From Klebsormidium nitens (taxonomy: Eukaryota > Plantae > Klebsormidiophyceae), in the NCBI GenBank assembly GCA_000708835.1, contig DF237081.1, forward strand, positions 116,136 through 180,135: a DNA stretch of 64,000 bases, in the 5' to 3' direction. A model generated the notes under the pieces. It saw only the letters and a list, made by a program, of their open reading frames with translations, was not told the DNA's origin and did not search any database. Positions within the stretch are counted from its first letter, which is position 1. Each line of letters starts with the position of its first letter. Shown one piece after another: positions 31,941 through 37,509 of this stretch. Both the position numbers and the translations under genes were made by a program.

Positions 31941-32045
31941 CTTAACCCTCCCCGCCCCGGCTCCTAAACCGAGAAAGGTTCGGGCTTAACCCTCCCCGCC
32001 CCGGCTCCTAACCCGGGAAGGTTTCGGGCTTTACCGTCCCCGCCC
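31941..32045. repeat. 44-bp tandem repeat (about 2.4 copies) overlapping the KCS stop region
   Basis: CTTAACCCTCCCCGCCCCGGCTCCTAA(A/C)CCG...TTCGGG starts at 31941 and 31985, with a partial copy at 32029. Confidence 0.9.
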
Positions 32046-35000
32046 AGATGCTATCCGGCTGGGGCTCGATCTTGCGCAGCGCGCGCCAGACCGCGCTGTT
32101 GCACTTAAAGCCGCTGCCGAACGCGATCTGCCACACGCGGTCGCCGCGCTTGACCCGGCCCTGGTACTCCGAGTACGCGAGCTCGTACCAGATCGAGGAA
32201 GATGACGTGTTGCCAAATCTGGAGGAGTAACGAAGTACGTTTCGTTTTGAGAGGTTTCAGGGATGGAGCCAGTTCGGACCTTGACCAATTGAGTCGGTGC
32301 CACAAGAAACGATGTGGTGCCCGACCTGGGGCATTGTAAAACATTCACGGTTTGGGTTTTTAGGGTTTTAGGGCTGGGGCCAGTGTGGACTTTGCTCCTT
32401 CTTTCGAGGACGAGAAGAAGCTCGTACCAGATTGACGATTGCGACGTGTTGCCGGACCTGAAATATCCTTTTGAGTTTCAAAAGTGTTGGCATTCTTGTC
32501 GCAGCTCGGGTCAAGTTTGAAGGTAATGGTTTCCTCCTGTCCTTTGCAAAGCAGGCGGAGCATGGTCGAAGAGGACGTGCTGTCGAAAAGGACAGAATCG
32601 GGAACGCAAGCATTAGGATTTCGTTCTTCGTGGCAGGTGCAGAAATCAAATCTCGACACGTCATCCTGGAAAGATGAGGACCTCGCGAGCTCGTATACAA
32701 AGGACGAAGAAGAGCTATTAGGCAGATCTGAATCAAAATTTGGTCTCAAATTGCGCAAGGATCGTCAGTCTTTCTTACGGGGCCTTTACTCACCTCGAAA
32801 ATGTGAGGGCTCACTTCAATCTGGCCGGCCATTCCTACGAACACAGACCAAGTTTTGTCCGGATGAACCATTCACGAAGCATCCGCAAACTTTCGTTGAC
32901 AGAACCCAGCACCTTGTTTAATCTCTGTTTAGGGACTCGAGCCCCGGGCTCAACCCAGGACATACGAACAGCCCAGCTGAACCGTTCGTAGTGCGCTCTA
33001 TGCAAAGGGCAATCTGAGAGTTGAAACGCCGCCCGTTGTACAGACCTAACCAGCTGCTATTCAACTTTTCGGACAAAGCCTCCAGACTTCTGACCCACCT
33101 CACGCCAGGTCTCCTCCAAGCTGAGTCCTAATCAACCCAACTCAACCGGTGAAGTTTCAGCTTTCACAAAGTGACCCTAAGACCGGAAGCGCGAGCTCCC
33201 CCGTGAGGTGCCATGCCGCTGGGCTCGACCTACCCTCGCAAGCTGCAAGTTCTTCTCCATCTCTTAGACCCGACTCCAAAAGTGAAATGACAAAAGTAAG
33301 ACAAGTAACTGCCTCTTTTGAGAAAGGATCTCGGATCCACAAGACTATGAAGAGGCGCCCACCTGTAAAGCGCCATGCGGCTTGGCTCGACCTGCTCCTC
33401 GGTGAGCTGCAAGTTCTTCTCCATTTCGTCCAGCACGCCTCGCCCCCCCGTGTGGATGCAAAAGTGCTCGAACGCCAGCTTGAAGTTCGGGATGTACGGC
33501 TTCATGTCGAGGCGGAGAACTTTGCGGCCAACCAGAACCAGGAAGAACAGGATCTGCTCCGAGAGGGGGAGAACTAGGGGCCCCAGAGTCGTGATGTTGG
33601 CCTTGAGGGCGTCACCTGGCAGAAGAGGTGACGTCAGCATCTTAGCACTTCCGCAACCTTATGGATTTTTTCTTTATAAACGAGCGCGACTGCCAGCTTG
33701 AAGTTGGGACGTAGGGCTTCATATCCAGGCGGAGGACTTTGCGCCCGACGAGAATTAGGAAGAAGAGGATCTGCTCCGAGAGGGGGAGAACGAGAGGGCC
33801 GAGAGTCGTGATGTTGGCCTTGAGGGCGTCGCCTGAAGAAAAGACGTGACGTCATCTTTCGAAAGAATGTGACATGAGATCTCGGAATGTTTGGTTCCGA
33901 GTTGAGGTGATTTTTTTTTTTCCGCCCGACGAGGACCAAAAAGAAGAGAATCTGTTCTGACAAAAGGGAGCACCACGGGGCCGAGCGTCGGGATGTTGGC
34001 CTTCAGGGCGTCCCCTGCAAAACAGACGTGGCGTGAGCATGTGACGTCAGAGTTAGGCTCACGGGCACAAAACTCTGCGCAGATTAGGACCAGGAAGAAG
34101 AGGAGAAGAGAGAATTGCTCCACGAGGGGAAGAATCGAGGGGAAGAGCGTGGTAATGTTGGCCTTGGCCGGCAGCTGGAAAAAGACGTGACGTCAGCATC
34201 GACGTCTGATCGAGGGTCACGGGCGACTTCAAGATACGGATATCAGGCCTGCAGTCTGGTAACGTCGCAATAACTATAGGTACTATAAGAAGACGTACTA
34301 TGTCCCAAAAATGAAGACAGAGATTCAGTCTTGAGCAGAAAAACCGAAGGCGACCGGGGTGTTGTGGAGGGCGTTGCCCACAAAAAGTTGACGTCAGGGT
34401 CTGGTCGGAGGTTCTCCAATTGGTCATATCTGCTTGAAGAGCGGTGAGTCAAGCAGGCCGAGAATGTTGTCCGTCTTGAGGGCGTCACATGGGAGGATCT
34501 GTGAAGACAGTGATCAAAGCTCAAACATTTTTAAGTCGCCACTTCTGATCGCCCACTAACAATCCCCTTCTTTCAGAGCAGAGTTGTGACCCAAGCAACG
34601 TCAGCGCTTGCAGTTTCTAAAAGTACGATCAGCACAAGACCAGGCTCTGAAGATTGAGCCTCAGGGAAGGCATCAAGACTGGAGATCAAGCGTCTTAACC
34701 CACCTGCGATGTCCACGATCCCCTAGGAAAGCGACACTCCGGGTGTGCCCCTGCCCGTTCTCCCACTGGGCAATTGCAAACATAGCTCTCGTCGCCCCCA
34801 CTTATCAAACCAATGAAATAAATCTTGTCTAAGAACAAGATTTCGAGTCGGTTAACAAAAGTTAAATAAACCTTCGCTACACCTGCCGACGGCCCTGACT
34901 TCGTTTGGAGAGCCGACACCCCCAGCCGTCGACCCTGCCTCCGNNNNNNNNNNNNNNNNNNNNNNNNNNNNNNNNNNNNNNNNNNNNNNNNNNNNNNNNN

Positions 35001-37509
35001 NNNNNNNNNNNNNNNNNNNNNNNNNNNNNNNNNNNNNNNNNNNNNNNNNNNNNNNNNTCACCTGCGACGGCCCTGAACTTCTTTTCGGAGAGCGACACCC
35101 CCAGACCGTTGCCCTGCTCGGTTTCCCTTTTGACAACCCCATCCGTGGCGCCTTTTCTTAGAGCCTCGATAAGAAGACTCCCCACAAAACAACAATTGTA
35201 TCAAGCTTGATCGATCGCTCACCTGCAATGGCCATAACTTCTTTGGAGAGCAACACCCCCGGCGTCCCCTGCTCGTCCTCTCTTCTCGGTTATTGCAACC
35301 ATGGCAGCTCTCAACGACCAACCACCATTTTCCACGCCCTCAACAGAGGTCAAGCGAAAACAGTCAACTATAACCAGAAATGCGCTCACCTGCGATGGCC
35401 ATGACTTCCTTGGAGAGCGACACCCCGGGCGTCCCCTGAGCGTCGTCATTTCATCTATCGCGACGTCATCGTTTGCTGTCTCTGAAGTCGAAATGGACAA
35501 CAGTCGTCAAAAATGAAGCTCACGAAAGTCATCAAACTTGAAATCAAACTTCTCAACCCACCTGCAATGGCCATGACTTCCTTGGAGAGCGACACCCCCG
35601 GCGTCCCCTGCTCGTCCTCCCGCTGAAACACGCAGCCGTAGCAGCGGTCGTCGCCCGCCTTGTTGGTGCGCACCGTGTGCTGCAGCGAGTACTTGGCGCG
35701 CCACCCGTCGCGGCCGCGGTTCGAGAGGAGGACCGCAGCCCCGCCCATGCGGAACAGGCAGTTGGGAATCATCATGGACCTGCGAAATGGATTCTGACGA
35801 TCCTTCAATCTCACTTTACAATGTAAGAAATCCTTGAATTTTGTCTGCTTCATTGTGGTCGAAGGGAAAAAGAAGCGTGCTTTCTGGGTTCGAGAGGAGG
35901 ACCCCAGGGCCACCCTGCAAAACAGGCAGTTGGCGATCATCATGGACCTGCGAAAGAGGAAACATAATCTGTTCAGCATGCGGTTTCTACGTTTCATCTG
36001 CTCCAATCAGGTCGGAGGAGAATACAAAGCCTCGTTTGTAAGTGTGAGAGGAGAACCGCGGCCCCGCCCATGCGGACCAGGCAGTTGGGGCTCATCATGG
36101 AACTGCGAAATCGGATCACAGATTGATTTGGAGGATGAAGGCCTATGACCTTGGACAAGTTCTTGATACCGTCAGAAGAGAGACTGGCTCAAATTGAGTC
36201 AGTCCTAGGAAATGAAAGTTCAAGAAGCACATGTTTCTCAATGGGACCGTGTAACATTCTCTGCCTTGCTTGTCAACAGTACTTTCTCTGATGAAAACCA
36301 GGCAACCGTCTCAGGGCAACCCAAACCTCCGGCAACCACAATTCTATCTTCACAAGCTTTTTTCAACGTTGACACCGGCTTACCTGTCGTTGCCAAAGGG
36401 CTTTCTTCAAGTAACATCAGGAACTCTTCTCAGGCCAACTCCCAGCAAACACACCCTACCACCCTCTGGTGAACGCCAGAAATGATGCTACGAGCTACCC
36501 TCGTCGTTGCTAGACTACCCTCATATAAACACAAGAGACTCTTTTCAGGCCAGCAAATTCAATTCCTCAGGAAAACGGATCCGTCTCCCTCTGCTAAACC
36601 GGAGACTTTGACACCGGCTCACCTGACGTTGCCAAAGTACCAGTTCTGTGTGATGTTCTCCATGCTGACCACCACCGCGATGGTGTTAGCGTGCACCTGA
36701 AGCAGGTCCTTCGCGAGATCCACGCCGATCACGCCCGCACTGCAGCCCATGCCCCCCAAACTGTACGTCTTCACATTCCCCCGCATCTTGTAGTGGTTCA
36801 CGATCATCGCCGAGAGCGACGGCGTCGGGTTGAACAGCGAGCACGTGGTTATCAGAACCCCGACGTCCTTTGGGTTAACCCCGGTCTTGCGGAACAGCTC
36901 GTCGAGGCACCCGTACATCACGTCTTCCCCCTCTTTCCGCGCCTCGGCCATGCCCGTCTTCGGCTGTTCCAACCACAGGTTTTCGGGGACGTAGGTCTCG
37001 TCTCCTAACCCCGTTTTGTAAACCAGCTTCTCCTGGAACGTCGCCCCCTTCTCGTCGCAGAGGCCGAGCCGCTGCGTGGTCTCCACGAAGAAGGACCGGG
37101 TTAGCTTTAACTTGTCGTCGGGTTTGTAGCACGCAAAGTCCACCAGGTACACCGCCCGGGCTCGTGACATCATGTAGATCGTCCCCGCGAAAACCAGCAC
37201 CGCCGAGGTTAAGACAACCTCAACGAGGTTAAACCGCAGCTGCTCCCAGAGCGCATGCAGGTCCGCCAGGGACATGCGGCTCAGTTCCGCGAGGACGGTG
37301 ATCACTAACCACGGCAGGATCAGCAGAGTTAGCGCGTGGTTAATCAGGAGCGAGTAGCCCTGGTAAACGTGTTTGAGGTTAACCGACTGCACGTAGTTTG
37401 GCAACCGGTGGTGCAGAGGCACGTCCAGCTGCCAGTGAGACTCCTTGGGCGGCGCCCCATTGGCGGCCTTTGGGGGGCCGTCCTTCGCAGTCTGATCGTG
37501 CCCCCCCAT
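32008..37509 (-). CDS. KCS: 3-ketoacyl-CoA synthase (FAE1/KCS, very-long-chain fatty acid elongase), about 522 aa, 4 exons
   Basis: Exons 37509-36623, 35779-35562, 33615-33363 and 32218-32008. Two N-terminal TM segments, [11 protein letters not shown], catalytic GMGCSAG (Cys), FCIHTGG (His) and [16 protein letters not shown] (Asn), plus [17 protein letters not shown]. Confidence 0.95.
32405..33268 (-). repeat. KCS intron 3 echoes (acceptor copies 32405-32462 and about 32680-32735; donor copy 33198-33268)
   Basis: GGCAACACGTCGCAATCGTCAATCTGGTACGAGCT echoes the exon 4 start. ATGGAGAAGAACTTGCAGCT...GTCGAGCCCAGC echoes the exon 3 end. Confidence 0.8.
33685..34490 (-). repeat. KCS intron 2 acceptor-side echo array (3 clear and 2 weak copies)
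   Basis: CAG|..GACGCCCT(C/G)AAGGCCAACATC copies start at 33832, 34014 and 34174, versus the true exon at 33615. Confidence 0.92.
34698..35445 (-). repeat. KCS intron 2 donor-side echo array (5 copies, interrupted by the N gap)
   Basis: GGGGTGTCGCTCTCC...GCC(A/G)T(C/T)GCAG|GT units with donors near 35389, 35221, 35060, 34881 and 34702; spacing about 160-180 bp. Confidence 0.92.
34944..35057. other. Assembly gap (114 N)
   Basis: Run of N inside the KCS donor-echo array. Confidence 1.
35895..36400 (-). repeat. KCS intron 1 echoes (acceptor copies near 35947 and 36102; donor copy near 36382)
   Basis: TTTCGCAG|(G/T)TCCATGATGA..CCAACTGCCTG x2, and CTTTGGCAACGACAG|GTAAGCCGGTGTCAA echoing TTTGGCAACGTCAG|GTGAGCCGGTGTCAA. 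Confidence 0.88.

Follow-up and report, generated by a model that had tools for sequence, protein, structure and literature searches.

Two intronic copies of a splice junction in a Klebsormidium KCS gene diverge from their exon as translated sequence does

Introduction

How can a piece of an intron come to differ from the exon that it resembles almost exclusively at silent positions? The question is raised by a four-exon 3-ketoacyl-CoA synthase (KCS) gene, encoding a protein of 522 aa on the minus strand of one 64,000-nt stretch of gene-dense eukaryotic DNA from Klebsormidium nitens (the whole of which we call the window). Intron 2 of this gene consists almost entirely of copies of its own two borders: its 5' half holds five copies of the end of exon 2 together with the donor site, and its 3' half holds five copies of the intron tail together with the start of exon 3, to which we refer as echoes 1 to 5. 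Here we report that echoes 1 and 2 have diverged from exon 3 otherwise than neutral DNA does, a real and statistically strong anomaly at a single locus of about 80 codons. Before landing in the intron, both probably evolved for a long time as working coding sequence.

Results

Echoes 1 and 2 differ from exon 3 at silent sites

The exons of the KCS gene and the copies in the 3' half of intron 2 are arranged as follows.

36626-37509, minus strand: KCS exon 1
35562-35782, minus strand: KCS exon 2
33363-33615, minus strand: KCS exon 3, the working copy, 253 nt (from the frame's translation, which ends in HTGGRG, and from RNA contigs)
32008-32218, minus strand: KCS exon 4
33690-33857, minus strand: echo 1 core, about 25 nt of intron tail (TGACGTCAC, a pyrimidine run and CAG) plus codons 0-47
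33672-33689, minus strand: echo 1 flank, the equivalent of codons 48-52/53, in register with exon 3 and heavily replaced
33924-34049, minus strand: echo 2 core, intron tail plus codons 0-30, ending in an A11 run
33880-33923, minus strand: echo 2 flank, the A-run and then the equivalent of codons ~34-43, neutral-like
34075-34200, minus strand: echo 3, an ordinary decaying copy with several indels and a tail 82% like that of exon 3
34355-34402, minus strand: echo 4, old, acceptor AG lost
34428-34510, minus strand: echo 5, old, with indels

Contigs from RNA runs place the joints of the working exon at 35562/33615 and 33363/32218, with GT..AG ends. The first two bases of exon 3 finish a Gly codon opened in exon 2, and Pfam PF08392 is found on P0001, a sister-lineage open reading frame (ORF) that matches exon 3. 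The exon-like parts of echoes 1, 2 and 3 start at 33832, 34014 and ~34176, respectively, giving ladder units of 217 and 182 nt, as compared with 253 nt for exon 3 itself. Each echo retains an intron tail with a branch-point-like motif, a pyrimidine run and AG (the last since lost in echo 4), which rules out a processed retrocopy.

In the codon alignment with exon 3, echo 1 differs over codons 1-47 at two first, no second and 14 third positions. These amount to 14 silent changes and two conservative replacements (V>I, I>V) and are accompanied by a 1-nt deletion at codon 42, in agreement with the count made by hand in an earlier sequence-only reading of the window. For codons 1-30 of echo 2 the corresponding figures are 4, 0 and 18, that is, 18 silent changes and two replacements, with a 1-nt insertion at codon 17; here the earlier reading had the replaced codons and the insertion right and put the synonymous differences at about 19, one above our recount. 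Its remark that echo 2 still spells an uninterrupted peptide with nearly every codon changed also holds, the 14 residues being intact despite the alteration of 11 of the 14 codons. Echo 3, over the 27 codons compared, has 4, 4 and 11 differences at the three codon positions and eight silent changes to seven replacements.

The silent bias of echoes 1 and 2 tracks the degeneracy of the genetic code. Of the 28 fourfold degenerate third positions in echo 1, 13 are altered, as compared with 1 of 18 other third positions (P = 0.003), and the four changes that the two echoes together carry at non-fourfold (two-, three- or one-fold) third positions are all silent.

Echoes 1 and 2 are not neutral copies

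For comparison, contigs of a sister lineage were found by an ORF search with exon 3 in Logan assemblies of three runs (L001-L003, L026) and in a JGI metagenome contig (L004, L025). Two strains of this lineage supplied 160 intron differences, which served as the mutation spectrum for simulating a neutral copy beside an exon that accepts silent changes only. The simulation rejects a neutral copy for echo 1 and for echo 2 (P < 0.0005 for each), which bears out the earlier contention that neither is one, and it still does so when silent sites of the exon are made to evolve three times faster (P = 0.005 and P = 0.001, respectively). Between the same two strains, 20 of 440 third positions (4.5%) and 159 of 4461 intron positions (3.6%) differ, a ratio of about 1.3.

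The spectrum of changes was likewise at odds with the simulation: C/G differences account for 7 of 15 in echo 1 and 7 of 19 in echo 2, both relative to exon 3 (P < 0.0005). Recent intron differences between the two sister-lineage strains are mostly transitions, with C/G differences at 6 of 160. Over the long term, C/G differences make up 53 of the 112 exon 1 third-position differences (47%) between the KCS gene of the window and its sister ortholog, since exon third positions are 84% G+C and saturated. Third-position GC is 83% in echo 1 and 81% in echo 2, and thus exon-like. The share of C/G differences and the GC-rich third positions together indicate that the silent differences reflect long evolution under codon bias rather than a short spell in an intron.

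Echo 1 is as far from exon 3 as a sister species is

The sister exon 3 encodes an identical peptide, and its DNA is 88% identical to that of exon 3 in the window. Over the entire gene, 196 of 517 third positions differ, with values of 38%, 35%, 33% and 48% for exons 1 to 4; a chimeric KCS gene was accordingly dismissed, there being no divergence step between exons 2 and 3. The introns of the sister lineage do not align with those of the window. Third-position distances among the copies are hierarchical, at 31% (15/48) between exon 3 and echo 1, 48% (15/31) between echoes 1 and 2 and 61% between exon 3 and echo 2, the last being saturated (18/30 over codons 1-30). The distance of echo 1 from exon 3 equals that of the sister ortholog from exon 3 (15/48).

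As the sequence-only reading had noticed, some states absent from the exon are common to echoes 1 and 2; at third positions there are six of these. At codons 10, 22, 27 and 29, exon 3 agrees with the sister species, while the two echoes have a different state in common. A tally of sites assigns one to exon 3 alone, compared with eight to echo 1 alone and eight to the sister species alone, which implies that exon 3's own branch is short. The split first codon reads GGT in exon 3, GGC in echo 1, GGG in echo 2 and GGA in the sister species. All of these encode Gly, which means that each lineage was under selection while spliced to an exon ending in G.

The sister lineage has echoes of its own, whose intron tails are of a type peculiar to it. 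Their divergence is neutral-like, with 20 silent changes to 41 replacements, and a search of these copies for whole-exon remnants revealed no residual similarity. Its junction copies, formed independently, lie at exons 1, 2 and 3 (L001:550-830, L025:6862-7052 and L025:9585-9643). Orthology of echo 2 with the sister copy eA was considered and rejected: the two share five states, a number not significantly above the ~2.5 expected by chance on a rough estimate.

Coding-like cores abut heavily replaced flanks

First and second codon positions record only an echo's own decay. By this clock, echo 1 is 2% diverged (2/94), echo 2 6.6% (4/61) and echo 3 ~15% (8/54), and the ages so obtained fit the order of the ladder. 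Two further clocks are provided by third positions and by the intron tail. In echo 3 both are consistent with neutrality, third positions being 41% (11/27) and the tail 18% diverged, with indels. In echoes 1 and 2, third positions have diverged by 31% and 61% and the tails by ~40%, many times above what the first and second positions would indicate.

We also show that echoes 1 and 2 are each a mosaic, in which a sharp-edged coding-like core adjoins a flank rich in replacements. In echo 1, 2 of 94 first and second positions are altered in the core up to codon 47 and 5 of 12 in codons 48-52 (P = 1.5e-4); in echo 2, 4 of 61 are altered in the core up to codon 30 and 6 of 18 beyond the A-run (P = 0.008). 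Throughout the KCS gene, echo cores are better preserved than the spacers. A finer mosaic, with echo 1 made up of exon-like and echo-2-like blocks, was tried and discarded, because the informative sites interleave randomly, as homoplasy at saturated C/G sites predicts. The coding-like core of echo 2 ends exactly at the A11 run (33908-33923), where exon 3 has AAAG; an A-rich stretch also follows echo 1.

The echoes are correctly assembled and remain unspliced

We see no present-day splicing of echoes 1 and 2 into mRNA. RNA depth over the echo region is ~1.7% of exon depth and consists of unspliced RNA only, and the contigs of four runs contain no joint from exon 2 to an echo acceptor, with the proviso that use below ~1% could escape contigs. 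Each of the two echoes carries a frameshift and lacks a donor site, and on reading the sequence we found no internal pair of donor and acceptor that would give a protein-preserving route from an echo to exon 3. The proposal that the echoes are presently translated through alternative splicing finds no support in these results.

An 837-nt contig from an RNA run spans 33589-34425 with zero differences, and the echo region is therefore not an assembly artefact. Intron 2 contains an assembly gap at 34944-35057, which is bridged by other contigs. Contigs of two runs cross this 114-N gap nearly directly (34877-35058), with ~0-13 letters between the flanks, which implies that the gap is oversized.

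The silent bias is not general among echoes of the window

We curated 24 further echoes, comprising head and donor copies of KCS exon 2, a donor copy of KCS exon 3, echo 3, two families in FtsHi4, four families in the OBAP-like gene and one more gene near 55.1 kb. Those of the KCS gene outside the 3' half of intron 2 are listed here.

33205-33270, minus strand: copy of the exon 3 end and donor in the downstream intron, three silent changes to five replacements, neutral-like
35887-36116, minus strand: H1 and H2, head copies of exon 2, neutral-like when pooled
between 34660 and 35447, minus strand: D1-D5, donor copies of exon 2, neutral-like when pooled

Pooled, the 24 echoes have 61 silent changes to 68 replacements, which fits the neutral silent share of ~0.46 (P = 0.39), whereas echoes 1 and 2 together stand at 32 to 4 (Fisher P = 6e-6). 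The silent bias is thus not general in the window. The sequence-only reading had reported a similar bias in FtsHi4 and OBAP; its counts are right (we obtain 5:1, 3:1 and the like) but small, and the bias itself was not confirmed in the pool. Copies nearest each exon lean towards silent change, with 26 differences at third positions and 11 at first and second positions, a marginal result on a post hoc choice. When 45 local repeat pairs were scanned for mismatches by codon phase, only KCS exon 3 pairs stood out, the scan being blunt in that most pairs are mainly intron. H2 had been a candidate for third-position bias and was set aside after a codon-by-codon count of three silent changes to four replacements. 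H2 (90% identical) lies farther from exon 2 than H1 and is the better kept of the two, so that ladder order is not always age order.

Discussion

How might sequence with the history of an exon have arrived in an intron? Old silent and tail sites, young replacement sites and sharp edges, when taken together, point to a patch from another working version of the junction. Our preferred reading, which we hold tentatively and regard as quite possible, is that the cores of echoes 1 and 2 were imported from a diverged, separately evolving working homolog of the junction. The non-neutral divergence that follows the code, the mosaic structure, the lack of splicing and the rate test are shown, whereas a separate working source and its route into the intron are what we infer. 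We envision that echoes 3, 4 and 5 arose in the ordinary way from the junction of the gene itself and are decaying neutrally, and that patches from the homolog were written into this ladder, probably by gene conversion or template switching. Conceivable donors would be a divergent allele or lineage, a homeolog or a close paralog that has since been lost. The patch would have begun ~25 nt before the acceptor and reached codon 47 in echo 1 or codon 30 in echo 2. On arrival, its silent and intron sites would already have been diverged and its replacement sites not, the silent differences having built up while the donor and the present exon were both translated. Decay of the cores after arrival would then have been slight, at 2% (echo 1) and 6.6% (echo 2) of first and second positions with one frameshift in each. 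Among the four explanations offered by the sequence-only reading, templating from a paralog or a divergent allele, which comes closest to this scenario, fits best, except that its donor was not found.

Slight encouragement for import comes from run X15, in which window-type exon 3 (depth ~100) occurs beside a variant exon (depth ~58) and a ladder contig that mixes both states. This hints at diverged versions meeting in one sample, which could reflect another lineage, a hybrid, a mixed culture or an assembly chimera. The variant exon, seen over 33392-33536, has 14 differences, nearly all at third positions, and accounts for about one third of the depth. The ladder contig, of 506 nt, contains three copies at periods of 209-215 nt; in one of them, states of the variant are combined with those of the window.

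Several considerations weigh against import. No donor emerged from protein searches, from a metagenome scan (best match 81% identity) or from a search of runs for echo words, the protein search having left out proteins >518 aa, and hence the 522-aa KCS and paralogs of similar length, and the organism's full assembly not having been covered. In that same search, with its omission of proteins >518 aa, the next-best relative of exon 1 is 58% identical; echo words occurred in no other organism's run, and an exact look-up of the exon 3 ORF returned no record. Two distinct donors are required, given that echo 1 departs from echo 2 at 15 of 31 third positions. The distal echo is also the more diverged one, an order that in-place duplicates predict and that separate imports make a coincidence. 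A donor allele as divergent as a sister species would mean that deep lineages had hybridised, and of this we have no evidence. Finally, everything hinges on ~80 codons at one locus.

Could the echoes instead be former alternative exons that arose in place? They would then be tandem duplicates of exon 3, translated for a long time, truncated by deletions and now dying, and their use one at a time would have been enforced by the exon length of 253 nt, which is not a multiple of 3. Such an origin explains the coding-type divergence and the intact acceptor signals of echoes 1 and 2, and it accounts naturally for the hierarchical third-position distances and for the greater divergence of the distal copy; tandem exon duplicates with unannotated intronic copies are moreover a known class (PMC9013439). 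However, the copies, which start at codon 0, stop at codons 52 and 43 of 84 and lack a donor site, units of 217 and 182 nt cannot hold a 253-nt exon, and a coding-like core beside a neutral-like flank is unexpected if an entire copy was constrained. Nor do four runs show a splice joint into echo 1 or 2. The copies of the sister lineage are neutral-like, with no trace of the remaining exon, and a neutral, younger-looking echo 3 is positioned outside echoes 1 and 2. We consider an origin in place unlikely, albeit deserving of serious attention.

Two other proposals of the sequence-only reading concern the relation between the echoes and the present exon. If the echoes were silent cassettes that exchange sequence with exon 3 by gene conversion, replacements would be purged; the mosaic of core and flank does show patches written into the ladder, and the KCS echo cores are better kept than the spacers. 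Under a simple model, however, we infer that such exchange caps the per-site ratio of silent to replacement differences at ~2, because silent differences are lost to conversion no more slowly than replacements are, and the ratio observed after correction for multiple hits is ~19. Selectable exchange would also keep third positions alike, but those of echo 2 are saturated and those of echo 1 are as far from exon 3 as the sister species' are, and we regard ongoing exchange as very improbable. Alternatively, silent sites of a fast exon might outpace the intron, in which case slowly decaying echoes would look recoded. The states that echoes 1 and 2 share and exon 3 is missing would fit, and third positions do evolve ~1.3 times as fast as introns; yet a ratio of ~18 is needed, and the rate test in the sister lineage thereby refutes the proposal. 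The simulation rejects a neutral copy even at a ratio of 3, and the agreement of exon 3 with the sister species at codons 10, 22, 27 and 29 is that of a short exon branch, which leaves a fast exon with scarcely any credibility, short of an order-of-magnitude difference in rates between this lineage and its sister. Least credible of all is that echoes 1 and 2 are lucky neutral copies or paralog reads that the assembly misplaced into the intron. The echoes were picked by eye, and the assembly gap does lie in the same intron, but the simulation gives P < 0.0005 for each echo and the test by degeneracy class is independent of the choice of echo. As to misassembled paralog reads, an eventuality that the sequence-only reading had itself raised, independent RNA-run contigs match 33589-34425 exactly and other contigs bridge the gap.

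How do echoes 1 and 2 compare with known systems? Tandem exon duplication gives rise to mutually exclusive exons and to intronic copies that go unannotated (Letunic et al. 2002 as cited in PMC9013439; Acta Naturae 2022). Similarly, KCS intron 2 holds copies of the neighbouring exon 3, each with its own acceptor, and echoes 1 and 2 show divergence of the translated-paralog type (32 silent to 4 replacement). In contrast to such duplicates, they keep just the first 47 or 30 codons and ~25 nt of intron tail with no donor, differ in length from exon 3, show no exclusive splicing and share their ladder with plainly neutral junction copies. Like echoes 3-5 and the other neutral copies of the window, which are arranged head to tail in units of 160-220 nt, echoes 1 and 2 each repeat a junction of the gene in which they lie and go unused in splicing; unlike them (silent share ~0.46, third positions altered ~2 times as often as first and second), they depart from neutrality at P < 0.0005. 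Gene conversion, whether ectopic or between alleles, that carries sequence of a working but diverged homolog into a copy resembling a pseudogene is well established in gene families. The echo cores resemble its products in being sharp-edged patches with many silent and few replacement differences inside an older repeat. They differ in that the recipient is an intronic junction copy rather than a pseudogene and in that the donor was not found. Our search of the literature yielded no publication that deals with junction copies in Klebsormidium.

If the cores were imported, intronic junction copies can preserve lost alleles, homeologs and paralogs, and would open a new route to tracing former hybridisation or the loss of genes in a lineage that stands near the origin of land plants. 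A broader extrapolation, which we think doubtful, is that junction-copy ladders of this alga are sometimes templated by a deeply diverged working copy, such as a hybrid partner's homologous chromosome or a lost homeolog. Should it be true, some echoes would be fossils of vanished alleles or subgenomes, from which earlier hybridisation or the merger of genomes could be read one gene at a time. A more immediate lesson is that raw counts of silent and replacement changes in short echoes mislead, most of them fitting neutrality once pooled. Real cases are separable from noise by combining degeneracy class, mutation spectrum, a rate test in a sister species and the contrast between core and flank.

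Additional observations

The acceptor of exon 3 (33612-33618) reads CAG/GTGACG. A fresh copy joined to exon 2 would hence give a donor-like site, as in a recursive splice site; the GT has since been lost in echo 1 (GC) and in echo 2 (GG). The intron tail before exon 3 (33616-33640) contains an in-frame ATG, probably by chance, which opens an ORF at 33640-33230.

Each copy in the 3' half of intron 2 contains the palindrome TGACGTCA, intact or decayed. The palindrome, a bZIP C-box/CRE-type site, also includes a CTGAC branch-point-like core, and it is absent from the junction and the echoes of the sister lineage. It occurs eight times in the window (33629, 33847, 34042, 34188, 34389, 2204, 26053 and 31077) against an expectation of 0.84, and five of the eight occurrences fall in KCS intron 2, one per echo tail.

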